Positions 1 to 47,939 are shown, numbered from the stretch's first letter. The stretch is 64,000 nucleotides of DNA from IMGVR_UViG_3300007513_000001:1-64000, one strand, 5' to 3'. Made by a program: numbers and translations. Notes: a model not told the origin generated them from the letters alone.

Positions 1-999
1 CAAACGAAACACACGAAACCCGACGGCATTCCGAAAGATGTCTATTACGATATGTACCAGCCAGAAGTTGTTGAAGAGTTCACAGCGGAAAAAGCTCTGA
101 TGAAGTGCATGTGGGAAGGCGGCGAGGGTCCATGGAATGATGACCTATACGCCCAGATGCAAGATCGCGATGCATGGATGAAAGAGTCTCGGGTACGTGA
201 GTATGTAAGGGCTTTACTTAAAGAAGATCCAATGGGATTTGTACATGATCTTGCCGCTGCATCGAGCGAATTCGGCGAAGAAGGTGAAACTTTTTTCGGC
301 GGTGATCCTGGAAAAGGTGGTGGAAAAGCGATTAAGCGCGCATTTAGCGCAAATGCAGACCATCAATGGCTTTCTACTCTAGACACCGTTCACTGGACTG
401 GTGAGATCTATGACATGGAAGCGCTGGCTGGTAAAGGAAAAGATGAACTTTCTACTACTATGACACTTTCAGGAGAAAACTTTGATGGCTTGATGGACTA
501 TGGCTTGTGGGTAAAGGGCCGGATTACTCTGGCAACTAATGACATGGACCAGCTTTATAGTGGTCACTGGGAGGATTATATCCCGGGTTTGACGAGTACC
601 GTGTCAGAAAAAGAATATGAACAACGGAAGAAGTCTTCTGGAATCAACAAGTTACCGACAACGTCAAAAGATTATAGTCGCTATGGAAAACTTAAGCGTG
701 GTAGTGAGTTTGGCGAAAAAATGGCGAGGAATATTCCTTATGTTTTAGATCAATCCACATGGGATAATAACGTGCCAGGTACAAACGAAGCTTTAGTTGA
801 TAACTGGAGCCCGGTTGGTATTATTCTCACCCGCGGTGATGAGATAAACGCGATATCAGGCCTGGATTATATTGAGGGAACAAAAGAAGACATTGAAGAG
901 TTTGCTCTTGGCGTGACCAAGCAGATAATGTTGACAGCTCTTGCATTCGGCGTTCCTATATACGATGAAGAGCGTGAAGTGTTATGGAGTCCGGAATGA
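1..999 (+). CDS. C-terminal part of a large acidic protein (5'-truncated), with internal leader-like motif RVREYVRALLKE
   Basis: Frame is open from base 1; internal motif resembles MNLLREYIRELL. Confidence 0.6.
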   Translation, partial: QTKHTKPDGIPKDVYYDMYQPEVVEEFTAEKALMKCMWEGGEGPWNDDLYAQMQDRDAWMKESRVREYVRALLKEDPMGFVHDLAAASSEFGEEGETFFGGDPGKGGGKAIKRAFSANADHQWLSTLDTVHWTGEIYDMEALAGKGKDELSTTMTLSGENFDGLMDYGLWVKGRITLATNDMDQLYSGHWEDYIPGLTSTVSEKEYEQRKKSSGINKLPTTSKDYSRYGKLKRGSEFGEKMARNIPYVLDQSTWDNNVPGTNEALVDNWSPVGIILTRGDEINAISGLDYIEGTKEDIEEFALGVTKQIMLTALAFGVPIYDEEREVLWSPE

Positions 1000-1343
1000 G
1001 TTCAGGTGGCGATTGCTATGAAGCAGCAGGCAAGTTCATAATGGAAGAATGTATGCTTGGGGGTGTGGATGACTGTCAATATATTCTTGTCCATGGTGAA
1101 GTTATGGGTCAAGGTCCCATCGCTGGAATACCGTTTGGACATGCTTGGGTGCTCGATGGTTCGACTGTCATTGACAGATCAAACGGAAGAGACATCTCAA
1201 TGCCAGCGCAGCTTTATTACGCGATCGGGCAGATTGATAGAATCGATAATGTTATTGAGTATCCGTGGGAAGAAGCCCGCACAAAGATATTGGATTACGG
1301 TCATTGGGGCCCGTGGGATCTTGAAACAGAAAGTGGATTATGA
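996..1343 (+). CDS. transglutaminase-like/papain-fold protein
   Basis: GDCYE...GHAWV...VID gives a Cys-His-Asp triad order. Confidence 0.5.
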   Translation: MSSGGDCYEAAGKFIMEECMLGGVDDCQYILVHGEVMGQGPIAGIPFGHAWVLDGSTVIDRSNGRDISMPAQLYYAIGQIDRIDNVIEYPWEEARTKILDYGHWGPWDLETESGL

Positions 1344-1954
1344 AAAAAAAGCCAGAAATCTTTACGCAATTCAACGCGCAGAACGTTCCTGTAAGCGCTG
1401 ACATTCTTGATACGCTAGAACAAGAAGTCGTGAATGAGTCTGCTCTTCGTAAATACATAAGAGAATTATTGATTGAGAAAGACAATTCTGCCGGACCAGG
1501 TGAACGTTATATCTATCGCGGTATGAAGATTGACTTGGGCTCTGCAGGCCTGGCATCTCAAATTAGAAAAGTGGCGCAAAAGAAACCTGCAGGAATATCT
1601 GATCAAGAAGCCGGCCGTTTTATTATGGGGAAACTGCAAAACGAAGAGATTGGTGAGTCTTGGACTACAAGCATGGACGTTGCGGCCAGTTTTGCAGACG
1701 TTTGGGAAGCTACAAATCGAGGCAGCACTCTTCACGTGATGTTTACTGGTAAGATTCCAAATGAGTTTGGTTATGATCCCACAACAACAGGTGAAGAACC
1801 ACCGATGTTCGAAGATGAGAGTGAAGTCCGGATACCGAAAGGTGAAGAAATTTTCATTTCAAATGTTGCAGTTTTTATTGCCGATAAAAAAGGTGGCAAG
1901 AACTGGATGAAATTCAAACCTGTTGCTTTTAGTCTTGGGAGTGTGAAAGCATGA
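1340..1954 (+). CDS. putative R-S-E class ADP-ribosyltransferase with LRKYIRELLIE leader motif
   Basis: YIYRG, GESWTTS and EDESEV motifs in ART order. Confidence 0.65.
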   Translation: MKKKPEIFTQFNAQNVPVSADILDTLEQEVVNESALRKYIRELLIEKDNSAGPGERYIYRGMKIDLGSAGLASQIRKVAQKKPAGISDQEAGRFIMGKLQNEEIGESWTTSMDVAASFADVWEATNRGSTLHVMFTGKIPNEFGYDPTTTGEEPPMFEDESEVRIPKGEEIFISNVAVFIADKKGGKNWMKFKPVAFSLGSVKA

Positions 1955-2493
1955 ACCTGCTCCGTGAATACATAAGAGAGTTGTTATCAGAAAGGTCTAC
2001 ATTTATGAACAAGGGATCTTCTGATTGGTTCCGTGTTGAACTACCCGGTATTGGATATGCTGAAGGAAGCCAACATTTACGCTTCAAAGAGTGTCAATCA
2101 GACGTTGATGCTATCATGAAAACTCCTGAATATTTAGCTGCAGAAAAGAAGCATCAAGAAACAGCGAAGCCAAGCACTGATATCGTTCGTAACGAAGAAA
2201 CAGGCGAGTGGGAAGAAGTCGAAGTCGGACCAGCAGCGTTTAGGCCGAGATTTTATGATGTTGAGAACGCTTGGATCTCCAACCCAGAAAACAGAGGTAA
2301 GGGGCACGGCAAAGAAATCTACAAGGCTTTTATCAATCAAGCTGTTGAATACTCAAAGAGTTACGGCGGCGTTTTCGTTGGCGCTCATCGATGTGTAATG
2401 GGGTCTGGGTCGTCTGAAGATGCCCAGCGTGTTTGGAAATCATTAGGAAGAGAATACACATCTTCTGGCATGGTTATCTTTATAGGGTTATGA
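1951..2493 (+). CDS. GNAT acetyltransferase with MNLLREYIRELLSE leader
   Basis: ENRGKGHGKEIY acetyl-CoA motif; SEDAQRVWKSL. Confidence 0.6.
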   Translation: MNLLREYIRELLSERSTFMNKGSSDWFRVELPGIGYAEGSQHLRFKECQSDVDAIMKTPEYLAAEKKHQETAKPSTDIVRNEETGEWEEVEVGPAAFRPRFYDVENAWISNPENRGKGHGKEIYKAFINQAVEYSKSYGGVFVGAHRCVMGSGSSEDAQRVWKSLGREYTSSGMVIFIGL

Positions 2494-2494
2494 A

Positions 2495-3184
2495 ATGAAC
2501 CTACTCCGCGAATACATAAGAGAGCTTTTGGCAGAAGCAGCAAAGGGCTTATCTGAATTTGAAGAGCGTGGAATGCATATTGCCATAGAAGATTCGGGTG
2601 ATGCATTTGAGATAAAGCTATATGATTTCGATCCGACATACCGCGAGCCGGGGACACCTGACGTGGCAAGCCCAGCTCCCAGTTCTAATTTTCCAGATGG
2701 CGCTCTTGGCATAATTTCAGCTATGAAAGAAGCAAGTACAGACAATGGTCCGTGTTTGGACGGATTTACTATTACGTGGGTAAGTGCAGAAGGCGGCTGG
2801 GGTCCGCTACTTTACGATTTGGCAATGGAGCTAGCTACGTCCAAAGGCTCCGGCTTAACGCCAGATCGAGAAAGTGTTTCATATGAAGCCAACAGGGTAT
2901 GGGATTATTACCTTGCTAATCGCAGCGATGTTGAAATGGTCCAGATGGATGATTTATCGAACCGCCTTACGCCCGGCACAAAAGAAGATAACTGCGCGAT
3001 GACACTAGCATACGAAAGAGGACTTGAGGGCGGAACGTTTTGGGATGAAGACAATCAAGAGACCCCATGGGATCCGTATGGCAAAGACGTGCTGCAACGA
3101 AGTCCTCTCTCGAAGATGGGTGTATGGAAAGGCGCTTCTAATATTGGTGCCATCAAGGCCATGGATAGATGGACAGAAATATGA
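2495..3184 (+). CDS. GNAT-like protein with MNLLREYIRELLAE leader
   Basis: GWGPLLYDLAM...VSYEANRVWDYY parallels the neighbouring GNAT. Confidence 0.45.
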   Translation: MNLLREYIRELLAEAAKGLSEFEERGMHIAIEDSGDAFEIKLYDFDPTYREPGTPDVASPAPSSNFPDGALGIISAMKEASTDNGPCLDGFTITWVSAEGGWGPLLYDLAMELATSKGSGLTPDRESVSYEANRVWDYYLANRSDVEMVQMDDLSNRLTPGTKEDNCAMTLAYERGLEGGTFWDEDNQETPWDPYGKDVLQRSPLSKMGVWKGASNIGAIKAMDRWTEI

Positions 3185-3792
3185 ACCTGCTACGTGAATA
3201 CATAAGAGAGCTAATATCTGAAAAAAGATATGATCCGCCAATAGAACAGGATGTCGTCCATGGATTGAGCTTTGACGAGATGCGAGCTCATCTTTCCAGA
3301 CATTTTGGTAAAGCAAAGATAACCTTAACGAATTCTCCGCTCATGCTAGAACAATCTCACAACCCAGGTCAAGGTTTGAAGCCAGAAGGGATTTGGTATG
3401 CGTGCGGAACTGATTGGTTAGATTTTCTGCAGACAGAAATGGGAGGACCATCCGCTGAAGAATATCAGGTTTGGGCTCTCAAAATTGATATGTCGAAAGT
3501 CAAATCTTTAACAACTTCAAAAGAGATCTCACGATTCTCTTGGAAATATAGAAACACTGATGAATATTTGAAAAACCCTGTAGTTAAAATTGTAGATTGG
3601 TCACTTGCGTCTAAAGAATTTGCTGGCGTAGAGTTTTGCCCCTATCCGGTTGGCGGTATGGATATTTCTGTTAAAAATGTTTGGTACGCCGGTATCGATG
3701 TCCCCTCAGGCTGTGTTTGGAACCCTTCAGCTATTACTAACTCTACTTTAGTAGCTGAGCTTAAAGACGACGGTTGGGAGGTATACGTATGA
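3181..3792 (+). CDS. hypothetical protein with MNLLREYIRELISE leader
   Basis: Leader repeat; Trp-rich body (KPEGIWY, VDW, SGCVWN). Confidence 0.6.
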   Translation: MNLLREYIRELISEKRYDPPIEQDVVHGLSFDEMRAHLSRHFGKAKITLTNSPLMLEQSHNPGQGLKPEGIWYACGTDWLDFLQTEMGGPSAEEYQVWALKIDMSKVKSLTTSKEISRFSWKYRNTDEYLKNPVVKIVDWSLASKEFAGVEFCPYPVGGMDISVKNVWYAGIDVPSGCVWNPSAITNSTLVAELKDDGWEVYV

Positions 3793-4313
3793 AAATTTTA
3801 CGAGAATATATAAGAGAGCTATTGAGTGAAGGTGTTGAGTTTCGCGAAGTTGATTCCCCGCTGAAATACAGTCGCTCTTCAAACGTCAAACGAATTGCGT
3901 ATTGCGATTCTGGTGTGACCGAGCTTCCTGGTAAACATGACACGTATTTTGATGAGATTGAAAGGTGGCGAAAGCGTACGAGTAGAGGTAAACTACTCAA
4001 AAAGCCAAAGCTTGAAGAAATCATCCCAGGCGTTAGCGACGCATGTATTATTGGGTTTTTAGACTACCACGTTCAGGGCCAGACCATAGATGGGAAAAAT
4101 ACCATGTGGTATATCGATTACATGAAAACTCGCACCGACTCTCGGGGCGCTGGCGTTGCTAGCAAGTTGGTTGACAACTTTTATGAAACCGTTGTAAAGC
4201 CGGGTGATCATGTCCATTTTGGTAAAATGATGCATCCGGGAATTGGCCACCTTAAAGATAAGATGGTAAAAAAATACCCGGATGTCAAAACAATCGGAGC
4301 GGTAAATTACTAA
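3789..4313 (+). CDS. GNAT acetyltransferase with MKILREYIRELLSE leader
   Basis: YIDYMKTRTDSRGAGVASKLV motif. Confidence 0.6.
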   Translation: MKILREYIRELLSEGVEFREVDSPLKYSRSSNVKRIAYCDSGVTELPGKHDTYFDEIERWRKRTSRGKLLKKPKLEEIIPGVSDACIIGFLDYHVQGQTIDGKNTMWYIDYMKTRTDSRGAGVASKLVDNFYETVVKPGDHVHFGKMMHPGIGHLKDKMVKKYPDVKTIGAVNY

Positions 4314-5182
4314 TGAACTTAGATGAATATAAGCAGCTATGCGGTAAAACGCCGCTTATCAAAATTAGCGATAAGATCTATGGAAAGCTAGAGACTTATA
4401 ATCCAACAGGTTCAGTTAAAGATCGAATGATTTCGTACGTTGTTGATCAAGCTATTTGCGGAGGTTTAATAACTGACGAAACGATTCTTTGCGAAGCGAC
4501 TAGCGGGAACACTGGCATTGCATTAAGCTCAGTGGCTGCTAACCTCGGATTAGAGTGCCGTATTTTTATGCCCGGCAATATGTCTATAGAGAGAAAACAA
4601 ATGATGTCAGCTTTTGGAGCGACATTTGTTGACGCTCCTGCTGATGATTTTGAGCGAGCAATTGAGATGAGAGATGAATTCATGTCAAAAAATCCCAATG
4701 CTTGGTCGCCAATGCAGTTTAGTAATCCAGCAAATGTGGAGTGCCACAAGCAGACTACAGCTTTAGAAATACTCAAGCAAGTTAACAGCATTGGATTAAA
4801 GTGGTCGGTATTCGTTCATGGTTCGGGGACTGGAGGGACTATTGAAGGCGTACGTCAGTTTTGCGCTGAAAATTTACCACGCACTAAAATAGTGATGGCT
4901 GTGCCCGCTGAGTCGCCCCACGGAATACAGGGAATCGGAGACGGTCGAGATTTCCTCGCTGATCCAGATGTTATGGACGATGTAGTCGTTATAAAAACTC
5001 AAGATGCGATCGAAAGAGCAAAGAATTTTGCTGAAGAAACTGGTTTATTTGTGGGCATAAGTTCCGGCGCGAATATTCTAGCTTCAGAAAGATTTGCTGC
5101 AGATAATGAAATTGCTGGCATAATTATAACGATGCTTTGCGATCGCGGAGAAAGATATTTATCTGTGTATGGTGAAAAATGA
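4313..5182 (+). CDS. cysK: cysteine synthase (PLP-dependent, CysK/CysM family)
   Basis: GKTPL, KLETYNPTGSVKDR, EATSGNTGIAL, GSGTGGT, GISSGAN. Confidence 0.9.
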   Translation: MNLDEYKQLCGKTPLIKISDKIYGKLETYNPTGSVKDRMISYVVDQAICGGLITDETILCEATSGNTGIALSSVAANLGLECRIFMPGNMSIERKQMMSAFGATFVDAPADDFERAIEMRDEFMSKNPNAWSPMQFSNPANVECHKQTTALEILKQVNSIGLKWSVFVHGSGTGGTIEGVRQFCAENLPRTKIVMAVPAESPHGIQGIGDGRDFLADPDVMDDVVVIKTQDAIERAKNFAEETGLFVGISSGANILASERFAADNEIAGIIITMLCDRGERYLSVYGEK

Positions 5183-5541
5183 CGTTAGCGCTTTCAAGAC
5201 CAATCTTTATTGAAAACAGTAGGATCCCAGTGTGGCTTTCTCATTTTTCTCCTATTACTATAAACGCTATTACTCTCGGACCATTCGTTTTATCGAGGGG
5301 GAAAATATCCGAAATCACAAGAGCTCACGAGACTATACATTGGCAACAATACATTGACCTCGCGATTCTCGGATTCCCTATTTTATACTTTGCTTATTGG
5401 ATAGCTGGTTTAATTAAATATAGAGACGGCAATAAAGCGTATTATCAGATTCCTTTTGAGCAAGAAGCTTATAAAAACGAAGACAACCCCTATTATTTTA
5501 TTGCTAGAAAGAGATGGGCGTGGAGAAAATTAAAAATATGA
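5179..5541 (+). CDS. HExxH-motif hypothetical protein
   Basis: AITLGPF...AHETIHWQQ...IPFEQEAY. Confidence 0.5.
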   Translation: MTLALSRPIFIENSRIPVWLSHFSPITINAITLGPFVLSRGKISEITRAHETIHWQQYIDLAILGFPILYFAYWIAGLIKYRDGNKAYYQIPFEQEAYKNEDNPYYFIARKRWAWRKLKI

Positions 5542-5678: not shown

Positions 5679-5783
5679 ATTTTATTCGCAAAAATGCTAA
5701 TTTAGCAACTTAGCTGTTGAATAACGTCTTCTTAATTTATACTTTATAATATAGGGCGAAAGCTTTTTTTATTGGTCGTTGAG

Positions 5784-6266
5784 ATGCGTATTAGAGTGGC
5801 TTTTTTTAAGGGCAAAGGTAATTTTTGGAACTGGGTAGTGAGGTGGTGGACTGAAAGTCCATATAGCCACGCTGAATTAGTTATGCCCAATGAAACCACT
5901 TGGATAAGCATTAGTCCATTTCTCGCTTCTAAAGTAGCAGCAAGAGAGAAAAAAGAGTGGGATGAAAATCAGTGGGATTTTATTGATTTTTTCATCTCTG
6001 AAAAAGAATATCATGAACTAGAAGACTTTTACGACGCTACGAAAGGCTTGAAATATGACTGGGTTGGAATGATAGGATCTCAGTTGATGCCTTTTAGCTG
6101 GAGAATTAAAAGCACTAAAAAATGGTATTGTAGTGAGTGGATAGCTCACGCTTTAAGAGCTGCAGATATTATTCCGTGGAAAAAGCTTAAAATATATGAG
6201 AAAAAAGATATCAGTCCAGGAACCCTTTACAGCTTAATCTCAAATTCTTTAGACAACAATTTATAA
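5784..6266 (+). CDS. permuted papain-like amidase (NlpC/P60, YiiX/YaeF-like)
   Basis: YSHAELV precedes KYDW and WYCSEWIA (His before Cys). Confidence 0.65.
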   Translation: MRIRVAFFKGKGNFWNWVVRWWTESPYSHAELVMPNETTWISISPFLASKVAAREKKEWDENQWDFIDFFISEKEYHELEDFYDATKGLKYDWVGMIGSQLMPFSWRIKSTKKWYCSEWIAHALRAADIIPWKKLKIYEKKDISPGTLYSLISNSLDNNL

Positions 6267-6314
6267 ATCTTCTTGCTTAGTAATATAATCTATTTAACGA
6301 TGGAGATTAACTAC

Positions 6315-7325
6315 ATGAAGAAGACGATTTCTTTTGAAGACGTTCTATTAACACCTCAATATTCTGATATTATGTCGAGGAAAGAAATAGATCTCAGTGT
6401 TGCTTTAACTAAAGAGATTAATTTAAAAATTCCAATTATTTCTTCTCCGATGGACACAGTCACAGAAGACCAAATGGCTGTAGCTATGTCGAATCGTGGT
6501 GGACTTGGTATCATTCACCGATATAATTCTCCAAAAGAACAGCGAAAAGTGGTGGAAGATTCTCTAAAGGAAAGTTTTTACGTGGCGGCAGCAGTAGGTG
6601 TTACTGGCGATTATCTTGAAAGAGCACGAATGCTAGTAAAATCGGGCGTGTCAGTTCTTTGTTTGGACATTGCGCATGGCCACCATGCACTAATGAGGCA
6701 TGCTTTAAAAGTATTAAGAAACACGTTTGGTCAAGATATTCACTTGATGGCTGGCAATGTTGCGACGCTAGATGGATTTAATGATCTTTCAGACTGGGGC
6801 GCAGATTCAATCCGTGTAGGAATAGGGGGCGGCTCGATTTGTTCTACAAGAATTCAGACGGGCCACGGAGTTCCAACACTTCAATCTATTATTGACTGTT
6901 CTTATTCTGATCGTAATGCTCTTCTTATTGCCGATGGCGGAATTAGAAACTCTGGAGATATTGTTAAAGCTCTTGCAGCCGGAGCTGACGCGGTAATGAT
7001 TGGATCTCTTTTGGCTGGTTCAAATGAATCCCCGGGAGAAATGTTCCATAAAAACGGAGAAAGGTATAAGGTTTATCGTGGCATGGCTAGTAAAGAAGCA
7101 CAAATCCAGTGGCGCGGCCATTTTGCTTCTGTTGAGGGTGTATCCTCAGCAGTTCCGTGTAGAGGAAGCGCAGAAGATGTGTTAAGAGAGCTTGAAACTG
7201 GAATCCGCTCTGGTCTATCTTACACTGGAGCAAAAAATATTTTAGAGCTTCAAAGCAAGTCTACGTTTATAGAGCAAACATCAGCTGGACAGCTGGAAAG
7301 CTCAACTCATATTAACAAGAATTAA
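6315..7325 (+). CDS. guaB: IMP dehydrogenase / GMP reductase family, no CBS domains
   Basis: [40 protein letters not shown]. Confidence 0.88.
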
Positions 7326-7386: not shown

Positions 7387-7599
7387 ATGGAAACTCAACT
7401 TACAACTTCTGGATCTCAACTTAGCAAACTTACTCCATTTGAAGAAGCTGCTTTGAGAGCGTTTCATTTCGGGCTTGCGTTAGATAATTGCGTACAGCTT
7501 CAAGCTTATATCGACACTAGTGAAGCCAGCTCTTCGAAAGAATCAACTTGGCTAGACAAAGTGTACATTGCTGAAATTATGGATTCTGAATTTAATTAA
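7387..7599 (+). CDS. hypothetical protein
   Basis: GGAAGG RBS downstream of the promoter. Confidence 0.6.
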   Translation: METQLTTSGSQLSKLTPFEEAALRAFHFGLALDNCVQLQAYIDTSEASSSKESTWLDKVYIAEIMDSEFN

Positions 7600-7606
7600 A
7601 TTTTTT

Positions 7607-7692
7607 GGCTGAGTGGTGGAATCGGTATACACAGGAGACTTAAAATCTCCCGGCCACAGGCCTTGCGGGTTCGAGTCCCGCCTCAGCTACCA
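7607..7692 (+). tRNA. tRNA-Leu(TAA)
   Basis: Cloverleaf, GGAGA-CTTAAAA-TCTCC anticodon arm, long variable arm, GTTCGA, CCA. Confidence 0.95.
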
Positions 7693-8128
7693 TTTCTTGG
7701 ATCATCAAGAATATACTGCGTTGTAGAATATAGTGCGCAGTATTTTAAGTTAAGCTAAGTGAACGAGAGATGAATCCTCTTTAGTAACAACTCTATTACA
7801 ATCTTTGAAATTTTATATTGAGGCCTTGGATTTAGCGGTCCGAGGAGCCGGTGGGGATACCGGTCGTAGTGACCAAAAAACTGACGGTGAGCGACGCATT
7901 GGTGGTCGCAAGAAGTCCGCAGGGAATGAGAGGTATGTACACCAACTGCATACTTCGTACCGTACGACGGATCCCCACCCCCTCTACCTTTTATGTGGGA
8001 GACACAGGCCAGAGTAGATGGTGGGTAAGTCTTACGAGCAGTAAGCCATCTCGTGGTTGCGTAAGCGTGGTCGAAGTACTGACTTTACAGGCTGTGTCTA
8101 GATAGAGAAGCTGGGAACTCTATCATAC
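7693..8128 (+). ncRNA. putative large structured ncRNA between tRNAs
   Basis: Nested helices e.g. 7850-7858/7971-7979, 8000-8007/8092-8099, 8016-8021/8046-8051, 8101-8107/8118-8124. Confidence 0.6.
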
Positions 8129-8204
8129 GGGACCGTAGCTCAGTTGGCAGAGCACCGGCCTTTTAAGCCGAGAGTCGTGGGTTCGAGCCCCACCGGTCCC
8201 ACCA
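8129..8204 (+). tRNA. tRNA-Lys(TTT)
   Basis: Cloverleaf, CTTTTAA loop, GTTCGA, CCA. Confidence 0.93.
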
Positions 8205-8211
8205 TTTTTTT

Positions 8212-8287
8212 GCCGAGATAGCTCAGCTGGCAGAGCTTCTGATTTGTAATCAGATGGTCGCAGGTTCGACTCCTGTTCTCGGCTCCA
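8212..8287 (+). tRNA. tRNA-Thr(TGT)
   Basis: Cloverleaf, TCTGA-TTTGTAA-TCAGA, GTTCGA, CCA. Confidence 0.95.
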
Positions 8288-8317
8288 TTTAAATTTTATT
8301 CTCGTATATGTATTTTT

Positions 8318-8572
8318 ATGCAGTACGAGTTTTCTTATTACAAATGTCCACTTTGCAAAGGATCGATTAATTGGTCTTTGAATAGCTCGGTTCCGGGAGC
8401 TTCATCACAAGCGTGGTGTTCAAACAGTCTTACATCTTCTAGAGCTAATTGGGATCGAAAATTATCTAAAGTTTGTTTTTGGAAAGGTAAAGTAGAAAGA
8501 AAGAAAAATGGAGAAGTACGATTATTAGACGCTAGCGGCCGTCTTCTAAATCCAGTTTTGTACAAGAAATAA
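8318..8572 (+). CDS. small Cys-containing hypothetical protein
   Basis: CPLC plus two further Cys. Confidence 0.5.
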   Translation: MQYEFSYYKCPLCKGSINWSLNSSVPGASSQAWCSNSLTSSRANWDRKLSKVCFWKGKVERKKNGEVRLLDASGRLLNPVLYKK

Positions 8573-8592
8573 ATTTGAAATAAAATATAGAT

Positions 8593-9792
8593 ATGAAAAT
8601 TAAATCTATTATTTTAGGATTAGCTTTAGCAGGAAATGCATCAGCCCAAGAGCTTAGTTCTAGTGAAACATCTTATACCGGTGCGACTATTTTAGAGGGA
8701 GACTGGGATGTAACTTTCCAGGAAAGCGTTGCAATTGCTGACAGTGATGATACGTTTCCATATGCTTTCTTTGAAGGCAACACGCTCTATGTTGGTAATT
8801 CCGATATTTATGAGAATACAGTTGATGCCATCGTGGAGTTTTTCTGGTTCCAATCTTCGATTGATAGAGGTACAGATTTTTATGTTGCCGTCATCAAGAC
8901 ACGCGCCACTCCAGGACACGACTGTTACTATGCGCCCTGGGATTGGGCACGTGGAGCACAGTGCAAACTTTGGGCAGATGAGTGGTCAGATTGGGGTGAG
9001 TATCCGGTTCTAAGCGTCGAAGCTATGACTGACGTAGAGCGCGAGCAAGGCGCTTTTCGATGGGACTGGTCAGTACCATTTGAAAGTTATGGTATTGATG
9101 CTTATGGGCAAGTAACATTTCAAAGCATATATGGAATTGGTTCTACTTCTGAGGGTGCTGCCATGGCTCATGGCGAATACCAAATGAACGAAGATGGTGA
9201 AATGAAAGCCGAAGGAAGCGTGCAAGTAAAAGGATATCACTCCTCAGAATACAGTGTACAAACCCAATACGAAGTGACACTATATGAATGGGATGTTTTT
9301 GTAGACGGAAGAGCTGATTTGATGGCTTGGGATATGTATCTTAACCTTGGAGCTAGAGAAACGCAATCTGCTTATCACGAATATTTTTTAGCGGTGCAAG
9401 TAGAATCAGGCCAACCATTCACTATAGATCAATTTAACTTTATAAGTAATTTTGATACTGGTTGGTATGATCCATTTCGACACGAGCTTGGAATTTCATT
9501 AGAGGGGATGACAATTAGCCAGCCTTATTATGAGCCAGTGGCTGATACAGAAGATCCGGATTCTAATGAAGAAGATACGGGATCCTCCGCGGGATATCAA
9601 GACACCGGAGTAGAGCAAAACTCTGACAAAGATACGGCATCATCGTTTGAGTTCGGAGATAGCTCGCAAGAGCCGGGGAGCAAATCATCTAGTGGGTGTT
9701 CTTGTTCTACCAGCTCAACTAATAGAGCTGGTCTCTTATTTGGATTATTAGCTTTATTTTCTCGTAGAAAAGAAAATCATGTCGGGGCGTAG
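8593..9792 (+). CDS. secreted/surface protein with MYXO-CTERM-like C-terminal sorting signal
   Basis: Signal peptide; acidic linker; GCSCS...[13 protein letters not shown] tail. Confidence 0.7.
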
Positions 9793-9859
9793 CGCAGTCT
9801 GGCAGCGCATCTGCTTTGGGAGCAGAGGGTCGTAGGTTCGAATCCTGCCGCCCCGACCA
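9783..9859 (+). tRNA. tRNA-Pro(TGG)
   Basis: CGGGGCG/CGCCCCG acceptor, TCTGC-TTTGGGA-GCAGA, CCA. Confidence 0.95.
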
Positions 9860-19644: not shown

Positions 19645-19808
19645 TGAAAGTCGGCGATTTGGTAAAAGTACAAACAAAGTTTTATGGCACAAAAATCGGC
19701 TTGGTTGTCAAGCACGGAATGGATGGATATTTTATCCAGCCATCTGACCACCCTCGGATGATTATTGCTGGGGCAGAAGATTGTGAGGTGATCAATGAAA
19801 ATCGGTGA
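19644..19808 (+). CDS. SH3/KOW-like miniprotein (54 aa, not in ORF track)
   Basis: MKVGDLVKV...EVINENR. Confidence 0.65.
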   Translation: MKVGDLVKVQTKFYGTKIGLVVKHGMDGYFIQPSDHPRMIIAGAEDCEVINENR

Positions 19809-19989
19809 TTTGGTAAAGTGGACTAACGAGTTCAATCCAGACTATTATTCGCATAGTGGAGATGGGCTTGTCATGGACGTCACTCATTATAACGATTCTG
19901 TTGGCACTATTGTAGTCGATGTTTTGGTGAAAGGTAACATACTCCGCTGGAACAGCAAAAGCTGCGAGGTGGTCAATGAAAGTCGGTGA
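19795..19989 (+). CDS. SH3/KOW-like miniprotein (MKVGDLV family)
   Basis: MKIGDLVKW...EVVNESR. Confidence 0.65.
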   Translation: MKIGDLVKWTNEFNPDYYSHSGDGLVMDVTHYNDSVGTIVVDVLVKGNILRWNSKSCEVVNESR

Positions 19990-20209
19990 TATAGTCAGAC
20001 TTGCGGTGCCGGTGTCTGGGCAAACAGGCCCGATAAACACTGGAGTCGTTTTGAAAACGTTTAAAAAGAAGTGCTGGCGCACTTCCGAGTACGGCCGAAA
20101 GATTGATTGGAATATAATTGAACCTGAGCTGCATGCAGAAGTTTTGATCAACGAAAACATTTTGTCGGTTCCAGCGGTAGAGCTTGAGGTGGTCAATGAA
20201 AGTCGGTGA
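19976..20209 (+). CDS. SH3/KOW-like miniprotein (MKVGDLV family)
   Basis: MKVGDIVR...LEVVNESR. Confidence 0.65.
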   Translation: MKVGDIVRLAVPVSGQTGPINTGVVLKTFKKKCWRTSEYGRKIDWNIIEPELHAEVLINENILSVPAVELEVVNESR

Positions 20210-20372
20210 TTTGGTGAAACATCTATATTCAGAACGCGGCATGACGGGGGTCATTGTAGAAATCGTGTCATGGAAGCATACTGAAAGCAAAACACCCTTT
20301 GTCTTGTGGGATGATGGTAGAATAGCAAAGGTCCAATGGGGACTTATCGAGGCAGTCAATGAAAGTCGGTGA
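20196..20372 (+). CDS. SH3/KOW-like miniprotein (MKVGDLV family)
   Basis: MKVGDLVKH...EAVNESR. Confidence 0.65.
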   Translation: MKVGDLVKHLYSERGMTGVIVEIVSWKHTESKTPFVLWDDGRIAKVQWGLIEAVNESR

Positions 20373-20541
20373 TTTGGTAAAGTTTACTGCCGGGGCCGCA
20401 TCTGTTGTGAATGCTGGCGTTGTTGTGAATGTTTGGACTATAGCTCATAAGAACAGAGTTCAGTCAGTTGATATTTTATGGGAAGGTAAAATTATCCCAA
20501 GGCTAGTCAACGCAGTTGAGGTGATCAATGAAAGTCGGTGA
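20359..20541 (+). CDS. SH3/KOW-like miniprotein (MKVGDLV family)
   Basis: MKVGDLVKF...EVINESR. Confidence 0.65.
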   Translation: MKVGDLVKFTAGAASVVNAGVVVNVWTIAHKNRVQSVDILWEGKIIPRLVNAVEVINESR

Positions 20542-20716
20542 TAAATGCAAATACAGAGATTACGATAGCAATGAATGGAAGAACGGAATCATATTGGATA
20601 TTCGCGGTCCGTTTAGTGCAAAAACATATGTTATCACTGGGACCGGTCACTTTACTGGTGAACTAGAAACAAGAACAAGCCACTATGTTACGAGAGCAAA
20701 AAATGAAAGTCGGTGA
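20528..20716 (+). CDS. SH3/KOW-like miniprotein (MKVGDLV family)
   Basis: MKVGDKCKY...NESR. Confidence 0.65.
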   Translation: MKVGDKCKYRDYDSNEWKNGIILDIRGPFSAKTYVITGTGHFTGELETRTSHYVTRAKNESR

Positions 20717-20939
20717 CCTGATTCGGTATAACGCTGCCGATTCTCGTAATAAAACTCTTGGGCTTGTTATCGAGCTGAAGCCTGGATGGCTATTTAATGA
20801 ACCCACGGCTACGATTCAGTGGCTACGAGTAGCGCGATATATGCCTAGAGCGTGTTCAAGAGGCTGGGATGCATCAAAACCAACCCCGGGTGACATATGT
20901 TCTCATCCACAAGGCAGCTGGTTTGAGGTGGTTTCGTGA
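20703..20939 (+). CDS. SH3/KOW-like miniprotein (MKVGDLV family)
   Basis: MKVGDLIRY...FEVVS. Confidence 0.65.
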   Translation: MKVGDLIRYNAADSRNKTLGLVIELKPGWLFNEPTATIQWLRVARYMPRACSRGWDASKPTPGDICSHPQGSWFEVVS

Positions 20940-21133
20940 AAATCGGTGATTTAGTAATATACCAGTGGGGAGCTGCGCACGAGCCAAAACACCCAGATGT
21001 AGTTGGGACTGTTTTGAGCTTTCCAGCAGCTTCTCACCCTAAAGAATTTCAAAAAATTGAAGTGTTAACAGAGCATGGAGTGATAGAAAAGTGGGTCATG
21101 CAGTTTTGTAAGGTGATTAATGAATCCAGGTGA
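20936..21133 (+). CDS. SH3/KOW-like miniprotein (MKVGDLV family)
   Basis: MKIGDLVIY...KVINESR. Confidence 0.65.
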   Translation: MKIGDLVIYQWGAAHEPKHPDVVGTVLSFPAASHPKEFQKIEVLTEHGVIEKWVMQFCKVINESR

Positions 21134-21323
21134 TCTTGTAAGAAATAAAAACTCTGAAGGCGGAGAACTTGGGATCTTCATAGGCATGCGTACGTTTAAA
21201 CACAACGCTCCCTCAAATCCAGGCGCAGAAGACTACACTTGCGCTGAAGTTTATTGGCCAGAGCGTTCTGGAAAATACGCCGTCGGGACAATCCAAACTA
21301 ATTTGATTGAGGTGGTTTCGTGA
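21120..21323 (+). CDS. SH3/KOW-like miniprotein (MKVGDLV family)
   Basis: MNPGDLVRN...IEVVS. Confidence 0.65.
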   Translation: MNPGDLVRNKNSEGGELGIFIGMRTFKHNAPSNPGAEDYTCAEVYWPERSGKYAVGTIQTNLIEVVS

Positions 21324-21550
21324 AAATCGGTGATTTGGTGCAAGTTTCTGATTGTGGAAACGAAAAAACAAGAGATCTTGATTGGGACTGTAATTGTTTC
21401 TTTTGCAAGGGAAACTCAAACCGCATAGGATGTGTTCTTGACGTTGCGACTCGAAATGGTTGGGTGGTTATGTTCGACATCGGAGACTGTAGGCTTGATG
21501 CCTTTGACGAAGCTAACGGAAGAGTGAGGGTGATTAATGAAAGTAGGTGA
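21320..21550 (+). CDS. SH3/KOW-like miniprotein with CxCxxC insert
   Basis: MKIGDLVQV...CNCFFC...RVINESR. Confidence 0.65.
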   Translation: MKIGDLVQVSDCGNEKTRDLDWDCNCFFCKGNSNRIGCVLDVATRNGWVVMFDIGDCRLDAFDEANGRVRVINESR

Positions 21551-21737
21551 CTTGGTTCGCAACAGTTGTGACAGTGGGTATCCACCACAAGAGACTGGTA
21601 TTATTACCAAGTATGTCGAATGGAAAGATGGCGAGACGAGAGATCACCCATATGTTCTATTTGAAGTGCTTTGGGATTCTGGTATTATTAAAAAATGTTC
21701 CGAAAATCAACTTGAGGTCGCCAATGAAGGTCGGTGA
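21537..21737 (+). CDS. SH3/KOW-like miniprotein (MKVGDLV family)
   Basis: MKVGDLVRN...LEVANEGR. Confidence 0.65.
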   Translation: MKVGDLVRNSCDSGYPPQETGIITKYVEWKDGETRDHPYVLFEVLWDSGIIKKCSENQLEVANEGR

Positions 21738-21912
21738 TTTGGTAAAAGTTACGCTCCCAAGCAACAGCTTTTTAGATGGAAAAATCGGAACAGTTGTATT
21801 ATCTGAAAAATATCAAGATCCCATATATGGTATTTGTATTTTAATCGATGAAAAAGTGTACGGGTTTAAAGAAAATGAAATAAAGACAATCAATGAAAAG
21901 GAGTTAAAATGA
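21724..21912 (+). CDS. SH3/KOW-like miniprotein (MKVGDLV family)
   Basis: MKVGDLVKV...IKTINEKELK. Confidence 0.65.
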   Translation: MKVGDLVKVTLPSNSFLDGKIGTVVLSEKYQDPIYGICILIDEKVYGFKENEIKTINEKELK

Positions 21913-22352
21913 AATATTGTATTGAGTCTGTGGCTGACAAGCCCGAACTTTGGAAAGATGGAGACCCAGTTCGCCCAGAGCTCAACGTCATATATAAAAC
22001 TAAGCCGGGTCGTTATGTCTATGGTTTGAAGGACGAAAACGGAGAATACGTTTCCTTTTGTTGCGTTGCACGAACAAAGGGGATACCTCAAGACATTATG
22101 TCTCTCAGCAATTTAACTTCAGTAGAAGGTACAATCTATGTACCTTATACAGTTTGGAGCTTACGAAAAGGAGCTGGAAAGGCGATTATCAATGCGCTGC
22201 TCGGTTTAGCGCGTGAAGAAAATTCTGGAATCGAAAGAGTGGTGACACTATCTCCTAGAACCGAAATGGCTAGAAACTTTCATTTGAGAAATGGAGCTAT
22301 TGAACTGGCAGTAAACGTTGTTTCTATGAATTTTGAATATAAGGTCTATTAA
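21909..22352 (+). CDS. GNAT-like phage protein
   Basis: YTVWSLRKGAGKAII...VTLSP...FHLRNGA. Confidence 0.55.
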   Translation: MKYCIESVADKPELWKDGDPVRPELNVIYKTKPGRYVYGLKDENGEYVSFCCVARTKGIPQDIMSLSNLTSVEGTIYVPYTVWSLRKGAGKAIINALLGLAREENSGIERVVTLSPRTEMARNFHLRNGAIELAVNVVSMNFEYKVY

Positions 22353-22354
22353 TC

Positions 22355-22555
22355 ATGAAAACCGGAGATCTAGTTCAGCACCACCCTTTCGGCAGTAAAG
22401 ATGAACACATCAAAGCTATTTACGAAGAGCACGATGCAGACTTTAGAATCGGGCTAATCATAAAAGAGCGAGAATCATTTCGTTTAGTCTCTCCCGAGAA
22501 AGGAAAACCCGCGTGGTATCAAGTAGAAGAACTAAAAATAATTAGTAAATCTTAA
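22355..22555 (+). CDS. SH3/KOW-like miniprotein (MKVGDLV family)
   Basis: MKTGDLVQH...LKII. Confidence 0.6.
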   Translation: MKTGDLVQHHPFGSKDEHIKAIYEEHDADFRIGLIIKERESFRLVSPEKGKPAWYQVEELKIISKS

Positions 22556-22664
22556 ATTTAACCATGTACACCTGGGCATTCGTGATTATCTTTTAATAGC
22601 TGGAAGAATTGCCTAATGGGATTCTAACAGCGCAGTTACTCGCTTACAAAAAAAGGAGGAAAGC

Positions 22665-23099
22665 ATGACTACTGCAATTACACGCGTTGGCCCGGGACTT
22701 TTGGGCAGCAACGTTTTTGATACAATTTTTGACAGCTTCGTCACTGACATGCCACAATATGTACGGCAGTCTACCCAAGGTTACCCTGTTGCTGACATCT
22801 ATACTAATGAAGATGGGATGACAGTAATGGAATTTGCCTTGGCTGGATTCTCGCGGAGCGAACTTAACGTAGAAGTTAAACCAGAAGTTCGCAGCATTAC
22901 TATTTCAGCGCAAGCCGAAGGTGATAGCTCGAGTCCGTCTGGTCGGCGCATCGCTCGTCGATCTTTCACGAAAACTTTTGTGAATTATGATGATGATCTA
23001 GATCTCACGAGCGCTGAAGCTACGTTTGAAAACGGGTTGCTGTCGATCGTTGTTCCCCGTAGACCCGAAACGCAACCGGTTAAAATTAAGATTTTTTAG
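22665..23099 (+). CDS. small heat shock protein (Hsp20)
   Basis: YPVADI...EFALAGF...RSFTKTF...ATFENGLLSI. Confidence 0.9.
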   Translation: MTTAITRVGPGLLGSNVFDTIFDSFVTDMPQYVRQSTQGYPVADIYTNEDGMTVMEFALAGFSRSELNVEVKPEVRSITISAQAEGDSSSPSGRRIARRSFTKTFVNYDDDLDLTSAEATFENGLLSIVVPRRPETQPVKIKIF

Positions 23100-23123
23100 T
23101 AATCTTTTCTCTGGTTTAAATTG

Positions 23124-23152
23124 CAAGCGGGTTTAAAAAGCCCGCTTGTTTT
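23124..23152 (+). terminator. intrinsic terminator
   Basis: CAAGCGGG/CCCGCTTG stem followed by T run. Confidence 0.75.
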
Positions 23153-23220
23153 GTATATAATGATTATGACCGTGGCGAATGCCTCAAAGACATTGATATG
23201 CGTTTAATAAAGGAGAGTGA

Positions 23221-23532
23221 ATGTCTAGAAAAAATATCCACCGTGCTGGACCGTATAAGAGAGAAGAAGTTATTGTTGGTTTTAGAAAAGAAGAAGATGA
23301 AACTTTTACAAAGATAACAAAAATCATGTCTCGTGATTGGAAAACTGGGGGGATTAAAAACCAGAAAAAGAAAAAGCCAGTCGAAGAGGGTCCATATGAA
23401 CTAGCGACCGTTGAAGATTATGATGAGAAAATGAACTATCAAGACATAGACGGCACTGAGCTATCGATATATTTTAAAAAGGTTGGCGATTTTAAAAGAG
23501 TAGAGATTGATGAGCCAGAGGAAGATGAGTGA
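23221..23532 (+). CDS. hypothetical protein
   Basis: AGGAG RBS. Confidence 0.65.
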   Translation: MSRKNIHRAGPYKREEVIVGFRKEEDETFTKITKIMSRDWKTGGIKNQKKKKPVEEGPYELATVEDYDEKMNYQDIDGTELSIYFKKVGDFKRVEIDEPEEDE

Positions 23533-23786
23533 AAGTAGGAGATTTAGTTAAATACAGAGGCTGGTCTCATAATGCTAGTTTCGAGCATGTTTCACGAAGT
23601 CGCGACCCTTTGGCAATAGTGGTCCAGACTCGTGCAGAAGATTCAGAATATCATAAAAGAATTAGGGTTATGTGGGTGGGAGAAGAAATCCCGATTCAAG
23701 CTCAAGTAGTTTCTACAAACGGAAATAGGTTTAGTAGCTGGTGCTCCCCTAAATATTTCCACGTTGTTAGTAAAAAAGGAGATTAA
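23529..23786 (+). CDS. SH3/KOW-like miniprotein (MKVGDLV family)
   Basis: MKVGDLVKY...VMW...FHVV. Confidence 0.65.
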   Translation: MKVGDLVKYRGWSHNASFEHVSRSRDPLAIVVQTRAEDSEYHKRIRVMWVGEEIPIQAQVVSTNGNRFSSWCSPKYFHVVSKKGD

Positions 23787-23945
23787 AATGAGAGATTTTA
23801 TTTATTCTAAGCACTTTAGTGCTGGTTTAGCTTTGCTAAATGGTTATTTTTGCATTCAATCTCTAAACCATAGCCAGTGGGGTTGGGCTTTTTTAAGCGG
23901 CGCGTTCTGTTGGCTGTGCATAGACAATTGGCGGCGGTCGGGATA

Positions 23946-24248
23946 ATGTTTAAGTGGATTAAACATCGACTAATGCATAAGTTGCAGCATGTGAGCTGGT
24001 CATCAATTAAGAAAACTTTTAAAGAGCATGGATTGGCTCTTGTTGTCATCATAGTTGGGTGGGAAATTATTGAAGATGTTGGATTTCCACTGCTTTTTAT
24101 ATTTCTTGGAAACCACGTTCACCCTGTTTTTTATACTGGCGCGCCGGCAGCATGGCTACTCTGCCTTCATTGGTTGATGGTGCCCTTAACGTGGAAATGG
24201 TGGATTAAAATCAGCGGTGAAAAAAATGAATCTAGGCGACTTAGTTAA
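23946..24248 (+). CDS. membrane protein
   Basis: Two hydrophobic helices. Confidence 0.55.
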   Translation: MFKWIKHRLMHKLQHVSWSSIKKTFKEHGLALVVIIVGWEIIEDVGFPLLFIFLGNHVHPVFYTGAPAAWLLCLHWLMVPLTWKWWIKISGEKNESRRLS

Positions 24249-24426
24249 TCTTTACGCTTATTCTCCTCACGACGCAGAATTAGCTAATACAGTGCTACAC
24301 ACTGGCATCCTCGTCGACTGGGAATACGAAGAGCCCGATGGCGGGTGGAAAGTTTTAGTTGATGGAAAAATAGAGACTTTTACTAAGATGTGGTGGGTTT
24401 GTAGAGCCACGAGAGAAAATCAATGA
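24226..24426 (+). CDS. SH3/KOW-like miniprotein (MKVGDLV family)
   Basis: MNLGDLVNL...GILV. Confidence 0.6.
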   Translation: MNLGDLVNLYAYSPHDAELANTVLHTGILVDWEYEEPDGGWKVLVDGKIETFTKMWWVCRATRENQ

Positions 24427-24635
24427 ATGCGATAATCGACCTTCACGGAATAAAGCACGAAGATGTTACAAGCGTTATGATTGATGCGTGTTCTAAGTAC
24501 GATATTCCTTTTGTGGTGATAACAGGACAATCCTCTAGAATGAAAAGGATTGTTCGTTTCGCAGTGGCAAAGTTCAATCTTTCGGCGAGAGACGCTATTG
24601 ACAATCCAGGCAGGTTGATAGTGGAGGATCGATGA
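24423..24635 (+). CDS. stand-alone Smr domain protein
   Basis: IIDLHG...VVITG motifs. Confidence 0.7.
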   Translation: MNAIIDLHGIKHEDVTSVMIDACSKYDIPFVVITGQSSRMKRIVRFAVAKFNLSARDAIDNPGRLIVEDR

Positions 24636-24868
24636 AGACCGGCGATTATGTTCAAGTCCGCGAAGGAGTCCATGATGATCAAATGCCCAATAAGCGCCGA
24701 GATGGGCTAATTGTAGAAATGGTAGGTCAATATGGGTGGAATAGAGATCCAGATCAAGTGATGGTTATGTTCTCCAATGGAGCTTTTCTTAAATTTCACG
24801 TTTCACAAATCGAAGTGATTAGCGAAGGTCAGCAACAACTACCAAAGAACAAAAAAAGAGAAGATTGA
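24632..24868 (+). CDS. SH3/KOW-like miniprotein (MKVGDLV family)
   Basis: MKTGDYVQV...IEVISE. Confidence 0.65.
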   Translation: MKTGDYVQVREGVHDDQMPNKRRDGLIVEMVGQYGWNRDPDQVMVMFSNGAFLKFHVSQIEVISEGQQQLPKNKKRED

Positions 24869-24876
24869 GTTAATTC

Positions 24877-24906
24877 TGTAAAAAAGTGCTTCCGATATGG
24901 TATAAT
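24877..24906 (+). promoter_or_regulatory. early-type promoter TGTAAA-N18-TATAAT
   Basis: Motif match. Confidence 0.8.
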
Positions 24907-24930
24907 AATAATATAATCAAGGAAGAAACA

Positions 24931-25098
24931 ATGGAAGAAAAAGAATGGGGATCAATCGAATACCCAATCATTCTAGGCTATACCAAGCCTAATGGTGAGA
25001 AGTATAAAGTGGTAATTCATAACTCAGATCAGTCCGAATATGAATATGATAAGATGTTTGAGTTGTGTGGTGAAGATGTACCATTCAGTGTAGATTAA
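24931..25098 (+). CDS. hypothetical protein
   Basis: AAGGA RBS after promoter. Confidence 0.55.
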   Translation: MEEKEWGSIEYPIILGYTKPNGEKYKVVIHNSDQSEYEYDKMFELCGEDVPFSVD

Positions 25099-25106
25099 GG
25101 TGATCA

Positions 25107-25286
25107 ATGAAAATCGGTGATTTGGTTCGCACCCCGGAGGGTAAGCTTGGCATTATTGACAAGTACTACCCAAACTGGGATGACTCTAGCAAAGCCAGTT
25201 ACCCATGGTATGTGAGTATCATGCCTGACTGGAGTGTTGAATACTTCAGAACAGGACAACTCGAGGTGATCAATGAAAATCGGTGA
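25107..25286 (+). CDS. SH3/KOW-like miniprotein (59 aa, not in ORF track)
   Basis: MKIGDLVRT...LEVINENR. Confidence 0.65.
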   Translation: MKIGDLVRTPEGKLGIIDKYYPNWDDSSKASYPWYVSIMPDWSVEYFRTGQLEVINENR

Positions 25287-25428
25287 CATGGTTAGGTTTA
25301 AGGACCTGGAGAAAAGAACTGGCGTATTACTCGAATACGGCGCGTTTTCTGATGGTTGGTGGTCTATTCTGGATTCTGATGGACAGATGGTTGTCTGGCC
25401 AGAATCCCAACTTGAGGTTATCATATGA
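25273..25428 (+). CDS. SH3/KOW-like miniprotein (51 aa, not in ORF track)
   Basis: MKIGDMVRF...LEVII. Confidence 0.65.
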   Translation: MKIGDMVRFKDLEKRTGVLLEYGAFSDGWWSILDSDGQMVVWPESQLEVII

Positions 25429-25637
25429 GACTCGGTGATGCAGTAAAAATAACAAAGCCAAAGCTTTATCAGCAGAATCTGATAGACGTGGTCGGAATTA
25501 TCGTAGAGCATTTCCCTCAAAGAGATCCACCTTACCCTCCTGGAAAAGCTATTTGTAGAGTCTTTTGGCCAGATGGAAGCGTCGATAAAACTTGGCGCCT
25601 GTGTAAAGAGCTGGAGGTAATCAATGAAAGTCGGTGA
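25425..25637 (+). CDS. SH3/KOW-like miniprotein (MKVGDLV family)
   Basis: MRLGDAVK...LEVINESR. Confidence 0.65.
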   Translation: MRLGDAVKITKPKLYQQNLIDVVGIIVEHFPQRDPPYPPGKAICRVFWPDGSVDKTWRLCKELEVINESR

Positions 25638-25848
25638 TCTAGTCATAATGCCAGGAGAAACACTTGCAAAGGTTTCCGGAAAACATAGCATAGGGCTTGT
25701 TGTTGCTGATGATTATGACAAAGTTGCGCCTAGTCGCGTTGCTGGTCGAAAGAAGTCAAGAATCGGTATCATGTGGACAGACGGCAGTGGACGTGTGGAT
25801 TATGAGCCCAGAGATTGGCTGGAGGTGATTAGTGAAGAAAAACTATAA
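25624..25848 (+). CDS. SH3/KOW-like miniprotein (MKVGDLV family)
   Basis: MKVGDLVIM...LEVISE. Confidence 0.65.
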   Translation: MKVGDLVIMPGETLAKVSGKHSIGLVVADDYDKVAPSRVAGRKKSRIGIMWTDGSGRVDYEPRDWLEVISEEKL

Positions 25849-26161
25849 ATTTGTAGAATTTAAATCTGGTTTTGGAGTTAGCATTCAAGCTAACTCTAGT
25901 AACTATTGCGAGCCTCGAAACGACGAGGGTCCCTACACCGCGGTGGAGCTCGGTTTTCCAAGCGCTGAGGACTCTTTAATTATCAAATATGCTGAAAATA
26001 AAAGTGAGCCGACAGAAACAGTTTATGGCTGGGTGCCTGTTGGTGTAGTGAAAGCGCTCATGATTAAACACGGCGAAGTTATAGCAGGCACGATGCCGCC
26101 ATTTAACATGAACATAGAGCAATCAGCAATTTTGGCGGAGGCTTTACTAGATGAAAATTAG
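25832..26161 (+). CDS. hypothetical phage protein
   Basis: GFGVSIQA...YCEPR...VELGFPS...VYGWVP. Confidence 0.6.
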   Translation: MKKNYKFVEFKSGFGVSIQANSSNYCEPRNDEGPYTAVELGFPSAEDSLIIKYAENKSEPTETVYGWVPVGVVKALMIKHGEVIAGTMPPFNMNIEQSAILAEALLDEN

Positions 26162-47936: not shown

Positions 47937-47939
47937 AAA

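Follow-up and report, generated by a model that had tools for sequence, protein, structure and literature searches.

A short N-terminal leader common to unrelated enzymes in tandem gene arrays of an uncultured marine jumbo phage, a possible capsid-targeting propeptide

The internal proteins of T-even phages are alike only in the capsid-targeting sequence (CTS), which is conserved (PMC3012670). In phage T4 the CTS is present on IPI–III and on Alt (Mullaney and Black 1996, referred to by PMC9958956 and PMC3012670), and gp21 trims short N-terminal peptides off the internal proteins and Alt (PMC9958956). In phage SPN3US, gp245 cuts after A-X-E (PMC10052503). Polyvalent proteins, which occur in phages and in conjugative elements (Iyer et al. 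2017), contain 2–15 effector domains per polypeptide, and their embedded peptidases were predicted to carry out self-processing (PMC5512222). The present analysis concerns a DNA stretch of 64,000 nucleotides, IMGVR_UViG_3300007513_000001:1-64000 (the window), in which a leader of 14 residues, MNLLREYIRELLxE, heads successive genes of a tandem array. The host of the array is an uncultured giant marine (jumbo) phage; the closest cultured phages by helicase are the jumbo phages Tunturi_5, XacN1, RsoM2USA and phage G, with 31–36% identity.

Four successive genes on the plus strand, with starts at 1951, 2495, 3181 and 3789, begin with M(N/K)(L/I)LREYIREL(L/I)xE, as an initial annotation of the window had stated and as a pattern search and a listing of open reading frames (ORFs) confirmed. 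A 30-nt pattern for the leader DNA was matched with no mismatch at 1951, two mismatches at 2495 and one at 3181; these three matches with ≤ 3 mismatches compare with none in 100 shuffles of the window, which ruled out chance as the source. The copy at 3789 encodes MKILREYIRELLSE, and its DNA diverges more than that of the other three. Copies had also been noticed inside two genes, and both were recovered by a hidden Markov model (HMM) of the leader: RVREYVRALLKE at about 187–225 in the gene at 1–999 (i-E 2.4e-4) and ALRKYIRELLIE at about 1439–1477 in the gene at 1340–1954. Applied to six frames of the window, the HMM gave only seven significant sites, namely the six array copies and ILREYIRFIQE at 63941. 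Between neighbouring genes there is either a 4-nt overlap (ATGA) or a gap of 1 nt; thus, the array is tightly packed and its genes are probably co-translated.

Contigs matching the gene at 1951 (gene D; the genes of the array are lettered A to G) reach 10 kb upstream of the window, where the array goes on with genes for proteins of 161, 174, 841 and 923 amino acids (aa) ahead of a 515-aa protein; the 161- and 174-aa genes bear the leader. A degenerate DNA pattern for LLREYIRELL matched 30 loci, which are spread over about 25 IMG/VR contigs of 20–293 kb; one of these contigs, with 293 kb, is this genome. Across matched and related loci, the leader was present on at least 94 distinct proteins in about 25 cargo clusters, with the motif at residues 1–3, two residues past the start codon in nearly all, and the leader genes form tandem arrays of up to ten per locus. 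In metagenomes, among them Tara samples, families D, G and C comprise 60 to > 200 clusters each (90% identity), and the contigs that carry them reach 322 kb. When the leader was trimmed off, the cargo families of the window were mutually unrelated by hhalign. Pfam matches over 88 leader proteins included GNAT, DUF192, PolyA_pol, PS decarboxylase, PAP2, RNase_T, HAD, ART-PolyVal (E 9.4e-4, in one leader protein) and 2H phosphoesterase. The codons for Leu and Glu vary freely across the copies while the residues stay fixed, so that selection acts on the peptide. The leader is a real module, N-terminal, under selection at the protein level and common to unrelated folds.

Position 14 of the leader is Glu in 77 of 87 copies and positions 11–12 are hydrophobic (Leu, Ile or Val); variants that are one residue longer retain an LKE or LIE end. 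The N-termini of T4 proteins in NC_000866, i.e., ipII and ipIII (MKTYQEFIAE), alt (MELITELFDE), gp24 (MAKINELLRE) and gp22 (MLKEQLIAE), all end in hydrophobic-hydrophobic-x-Glu (FIAE, LFDE, LLRE and LIAE), as does the leader with LLxE. In addition, ipII and ipIII and the leader have the pattern E6-aromatic7-I8-x-E10 in common (E6-Y7-I8-x-E10 in the leader); this pattern and the common end are too short for statistics. The resemblance to the T4 CTS that had been pointed out initially is seen in the T4 N-termini themselves. In AlphaFold2 (AF2) models of the proteins of genes C and E, the leader appears as a separate helix of lower confidence outside the fold.

A second leader of 14 aa, MKITKRQLRRIIKE, of the form MK(I/V)T(K/R)RQL(R/K)xII(K/R)E, heads about 22 successive small genes at 47604–58076 (+) and is also internal in the fused genes 48986–49897 and 50981–51760. 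It ends in I-I-x-E and agrees with the first leader in the hydrophobic positions, R9 and E14; the two families differ strongly in charge and do not share nucleotides, yet the hydrophobic-hydrophobic-x-Glu end is common to both. With a DNA pattern for the second leader, 81 loci were matched in IMG/VR; at least 10 of the contigs concerned also bear the MNLLREYIRELL leader. Many of the gene bodies behind the second leader look acidic.

Among the cargos of the first leader, the predicted R-S-ExE ADP-ribosyltransferase (ART) encoded by gene C (1340–1954, +) is well supported, in agreement with the initial annotation. Its protein consists of a 32-aa N-terminal extension, the internal leader ALRKYIRELLIE and the ART domain. 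The catalytic set R60, S107 (SWT) and E160-S-E162 is invariant in 22 homologs, most homologs being proteins of 172 aa that begin with the leader. With the AF2 model (pLDDT 78), the top Foldseek matches in PDB were all ART toxins, namely TreTu/TreX (prob 0.98), EcPltA and cholera A1, at borderline E values of 0.009–0.4, and the leads from the Atlas language model belonged to the ART clan (EspN, DRAT, NarE). No Pfam match was obtained for gene C, and an hhalign comparison of its family with T4 Alt was not significant, with only ExE-V-x-x-P-x-G in the aligned part.

Two clear GNAT domains and a GNAT-like one had also been claimed. A GNAT assignment is supported by family comparison for gene G (3789–4313, +; leader 3789–3830): Acetyltransf_CG (E 0.002) and Acetyltransf_1 (E 0.005) matched below threshold, at 17–18 bits versus cut-offs of 20.7 and 30, and some homologs (56–64% identity) carry PF00583 or PF14542, one being called GNAT by JGI. 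For the other two genes the claim was reduced to leads. Gene E (2495–3184, +; leader 2495–2536) belongs to the commonest cargo family, with 21 distinct members in related loci; in its AF2 model (pTM 0.79) the leader forms a helix at residues 3–13. Foldseek, which had been proposed as a check of the cargo folds and agreed for the ART, returned for gene E a list that was mostly GNATs but weak (PDB E ≥ 0.4; BFVD NAT_SF E 2.8e-3); Atlas leads to GNATs scored 0.91–0.94, and there was no Pfam GNAT match, so that the body may be called GNAT-like as a lead from modelling. Gene D (1951–2493, +; leader 1951–1992) has a probable GNAT-like body as judged by Atlas leads (0.90–0.93) and the motif NRGKGHGK, which is Q/RxxGxG-like, with no match in Pfam or PDB; in an hhalign comparison after trimming of the leader, gene D matched the motif-A region of gene E with a probability of 50%. 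In metagenomes, gene D has at least 200 clusters of homologs. Gene F (3181–3792, +; leader 3181–3222) has two leader-bearing relatives, in loci L009 and L033; searches including Pfam and NCBIfam assigned no family to it or to the C-terminal domain of gene A. Genes C to G each encode a single domain. Profile searches of families B, C, D, E and G against PDB sequences gave nothing meaningful, and an NCBIfam scan of all cargos gave no match.

Gene B (996–1343, +; start at 984 or 996) encodes 115 aa and carries no leader, although most of its relatives do. In the alignment of its family, which is found in most long arrays, a Cys, a His and an Asp are invariant (GxCxxxA ... HAWVE ... FD). This recalls a transglutaminase/papain-like family; since neither Pfam nor PDB sequences were matched, the putative fold is taken from the motif.

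Several proteins at the head of the array appear to be polyproteins in which the leader recurs. Gene A (1–999, +) does contain the internal motif that had been described, but comparison of contigs showed that it is only the C-terminal 332 aa of a polyprotein-like gene for the leader-headed 515-aa protein (7502–9049 in the related locus L031). The N-terminus of this protein, MNLLREYIRVLVE, lies upstream of the window and is followed by a helical domain, a Cys-His-Asp peptidase-like domain, the internal leader and a "DPMGFVHDLAAAS" domain; in the variant contig L033 (1425–2249), the latter forms a gene by itself, which is headed by a leader of its own. The 841-aa protein has one N-terminal and two internal copies. 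In the 923-aa protein, DUF192 (residues 9–110), PolyA_pol (163–378), a domain of the gene E family and PAP2 (825–915) were found, and leader-like motifs, LRKSIRLLLRE at 122–132 and FVKEILKE at about 743–749, fall between the Pfam domains. At the domain junctions it is mainly R-x-L-L-x-E, the leader's C-terminal half, that is kept. Further leader cargos were a HAD-type phosphatase (FDFDDTL; L005, 597–1145) and a phosphatidylserine decarboxylase fused to a Cys-His-Asp domain (L029, 3331–4458). A leader protein with the motif FYHFS is encoded at 2713–3219 of L006; weak ART-PolyVal and DUF3990 matches came from a pooled Pfam scan in which the matching member is unnamed, and the FYHFS protein is a guess for this member.

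With about even confidence, the leader could be a capsid-targeting propeptide, cleaved by a protease, on enzymes that would be injected together with the DNA. This reading is favoured because the leader is modular on about 25 cargo clusters which are unrelated once trimmed, because selection acts on the peptide, because its terminal Glu and hydrophobic pattern match the T4 gp21 sites, because leader-like motifs punctuate the domains of polyproteins, because the AF2 models place the leader outside the fold, because the second leader also ends in I-I-x-E, and because the cargo repertoire matches that of packaged polyvalent proteins and T4 Alt (PMC5512222). We infer the following course from targeting to injection. 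The amphipathic helix of the leader would dock the new protein into the core of the assembling prohead; a Glu-specific protease of head maturation would cut after the terminal hydrophobic-hydrophobic-x-Glu, and the same cut could be made at leader-like junctions inside the fused polyproteins. The mature enzymes would then be retained by the capsid and pass into the host together with the DNA. The injected set would comprise the ART, GNAT-type acyltransferases and the putative Cys-His-Asp enzyme, to which related arrays may add a nucleotidyltransferase, phosphatases and an exonuclease.

A number of observations weigh against this reading. No prohead protease, capsid, portal or scaffold gene was detected in the window, including a Pfam/PHROG sweep of 67 of its ORFs, or along 20 kb upstream of it. 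A tblastn search with T4 gp20–24 against the related loci (about 1 Mb) gave no match, and capsid, portal or protease families were absent among the 25 listed of the 43 Pfam families matched for 69 large ORFs beside loci of the first leader. The arrays adjoin metabolic, chaperone and replication genes and not structural ones. Since the loci searched contained neither a head protease nor a structural gene, packaging is a step that we infer. The leader resembles the T4 CTS in a short motif, with no demonstrable homology, and the position that follows the presumed cut admits more than small residues. Among GenBank phages, no match was obtained by blastn or tblastn with the region, gene E, residues 1–20 of gene D or a protein bearing the first leader, and no cultured relative was found; nor did a literature search with the motif strings find a paper. 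Other proteases are candidates nearby. A 120-aa protein encoded at 5179–5541 (+), with HExxH (HETIH) and hydrophobic segments, matched the "protease" family phrog_15610 (E 1.4e-21), and at 58618–59385 (–) there is a trypsin-like serine peptidase (Pfam Trypsin_2, weak arterivirus S32) with an N-terminal hydrophobic anchor; the Cys-His-Asp family within the arrays may be another. Finally, certain codons of the leader are nearly fixed: Ile8 is ATA in 82 of 85 copies versus 31% in gene bodies. Among the 87 distinct copies, Tyr7 is TAC in 71 of 84, Arg5 is CGN and Arg9 is AGR (e.g., 1963–1977 in the window), and the fixed ATA and AGR codons (TACATAAGRG) hint at some constraint at the nucleotide level.

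The location among non-structural genes would also suit an uncleaved docking helix, which would bring the enzymes to one partner in the infected cell (for instance an assembly of several enzymes, a compartment of the phage or a phage chaperone such as Hsp70), with no packaging. The leader as a short amphipathic helix apart from the fold and the nearby genes for Hsp70, FKBP, Hsp20 and Cpn60 agree with this; however, the near-invariant terminal Glu and the R-x-L-L-x-E at junctions fit a cleavage site better, and the two leader families, which differ strongly in charge, have the same hydrophobic-hydrophobic-x-Glu end. Acidic residues are also untypical of Hsp70-binding motifs. This explanation is considered doubtful.

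A cut at the leader could be made by a protease of the array itself or next to it, i.e., the Cys-His-Asp family (gene B and the middle domain of gene A) or the HExxH protein, which would free and activate the enzymes of polyproteins in the cytoplasm, much as viral polyproteins are processed, with or without packaging. The Cys-His-Asp family occurs in most long arrays and is embedded between the leader motifs of a polyprotein, self-processing by embedded peptidases was predicted for polyvalent proteins (PMC5512222), and the HExxH "protease" gene lies two genes downstream of the array. But genes with a single domain need no leader merely for cutting, the stand-alone Cys-His-Asp copy of the window is without leader, and this putative family could equally be an effector of the deamidase or transglutaminase type. 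A role as the site of such a protease appears unlikely.

An element acting at the nucleotide level, for translation initiation or coupling or as a recombination handle for the swapping of cassettes, would make the peptide a by-product. The fixed codons of Tyr7, Ile8 and Arg9, the coupling of genes by 4-nt overlaps and a leader codon identity that is slightly higher within than between genomes (0.57 vs 0.49) point in this direction; yet the Leu and Glu codons are randomised with the residues kept, the motif is kept inside polyproteins, where no initiation occurs, and the second leader has the amino-acid pattern with different nucleotides, which makes this improbable. A relic of common descent, with one paralog family whose bodies diverged beyond recognition, is very improbable even though the window has other tandem paralogs (e.g., about 25 MKVGDLV genes at 19–27 kb), since the cargos differ in fold and Pfam family (ART, GNAT, PolyA_pol, PAP2, HAD, RNase_T) and the trimmed bodies are without similarity; simple paralogy was rejected by hhalign of the window cargos.

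If the reading as a packaged and cleaved propeptide is extended to both leaders, a somewhat more tentative picture emerges, in which a clade of marine jumbo phages would rely on a universal N-terminal address tag of 14 residues, with MNLLREYIRELLxE and MKITKRQLRRIIKE as its two versions and hydrophobic-hydrophobic-x-Glu at the end of both, to bring the products of > 30 genes in each genome into the capsid; the tag would punctuate polyproteins, and one protease would release a large arsenal of host-modifying enzymes, freely reshuffled and injected with the DNA. Such a system of "split polyvalent proteins" would be far larger than the internal-protein set of T4. If the leader acts as the T4 CTS does, a simple sequence rule could pick out all effectors that are delivered by the virions of an abundant group of uncultured marine jumbo phages; in ocean metagenomes these amount to protein clusters by the hundreds, most of which are without known function. 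The ART and GNAT cargos would be direct candidates for enzymes of host take-over or anti-defence. Also, a portable packaging tag with its cleavage site could become available for the engineering of large phage capsids.

Beyond the array, two further sites had been listed initially as copies of the leader. The one at the end of the window is confirmed: a gene which is cut by the window end (63893–64000, +) has a 16-aa extension, followed by ILREYIRFIQE (63941–63973) with an HMM i-E of 0.0027. The isolated gene at 58321–58641 (+) starts with a loose variant, MSNSLLLVRDYISFILKE, to which the HMM gives no score, and its membership is therefore weak. The serine peptidase gene at 58618–59385 is convergent with this gene and overlaps its 3' end. 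About 25 tandem genes of one family, which encode 60–85 aa and start with MK(V/I)GDLV, occupy about 19795–27326 (+). The C-terminal EV(I/V)NE(S/N)R ("EVINESR") of ORFs at 19–27 kb was considered as a tag and rejected, being an out-of-frame overlap with the ATGAAAGTAGGTGA start of the next gene.

Immediately downstream of the array, a PALP cysteine synthase gene (4313–5182) precedes the HExxH gene. A protein of 160–164 aa is encoded at 5772–6266 (+); its motifs "SHAELV" and "YCSEWIAHAL" suggest a papain/NlpC-P60-like fold, and it is without leader. A GMP reductase/IMPDH-family protein (6273–7325) and genes for tRNA-Leu, Lys, Thr and Pro (7607–9859) follow. A probable Hsp20 (22665–23099) and a probable SET-domain protein (56991–57491) came from a pooled scan, with the ORFs assigned by eye, and a match to the C-terminal domain of ribosomal L7/L12 was seen among the cell-like genes. 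Upstream of the window (L040, 492–7548), asparagine synthase, FKBP and Hsp70 are encoded, Hsp70 at about 10 kb upstream; genes for Hsp70, FKBP, Hsp20 and Cpn60 were noted in or near the leader-bearing genomes.

The double-glycine leaders of bacteriocins are likewise short, conserved and amphipathic N-termini on diverse cargos, and are removed by a dedicated papain-like peptidase; in the arrays described here there is no Gly-Gly site, ABC transporter or export context. SPN3US, a phiKZ-like phage, is likewise giant and, as would be the case here, numerous proteins inside its head are cut after Glu at x-x-E, with removal of N-terminal propeptides, some of them short (20–24 aa) (PMC10052503). Its propeptides are, however, not a common conserved tag, P3 is Ala versus Leu or Ile here, and the analysis revealed no relationship with phiKZ-like phages.

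With T4, the arrays have in common a short N-terminal peptide on otherwise unrelated, diverse and fast-changing proteins, and a cargo which includes a predicted ADP-ribosyltransferase, as is Alt. The leader here has 14 residues versus 10, and dozens of genes per genome are tagged, in tight tandem arrays and mostly for enzymes; moreover, the same motif punctuates polyproteins, and the phage is an unrelated, uncultured jumbo phage. The polyvalent proteins come close in repertoire (ART, with a weak ART-PolyVal match, GNAT, a Pol-beta-type nucleotidyltransferase and peptidase-like domains) and in that multi-domain proteins (515, 841 and 923 aa) head the array, and delivery with the DNA is predicted for both. 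They differ in that genes C to G of the window are not multi-domain, the domains residing here mostly in separate genes, each with a leader, while the fused forms keep the leader between domains and no linkage to MuF or portal was seen. The arrangement is, in effect, a "split" polyvalent protein. If the favoured reading is correct, packaged effectors would be organised as tagged cassettes which fuse and split freely, and the internal proteins of T4 would be linked with the polyvalent proteins.

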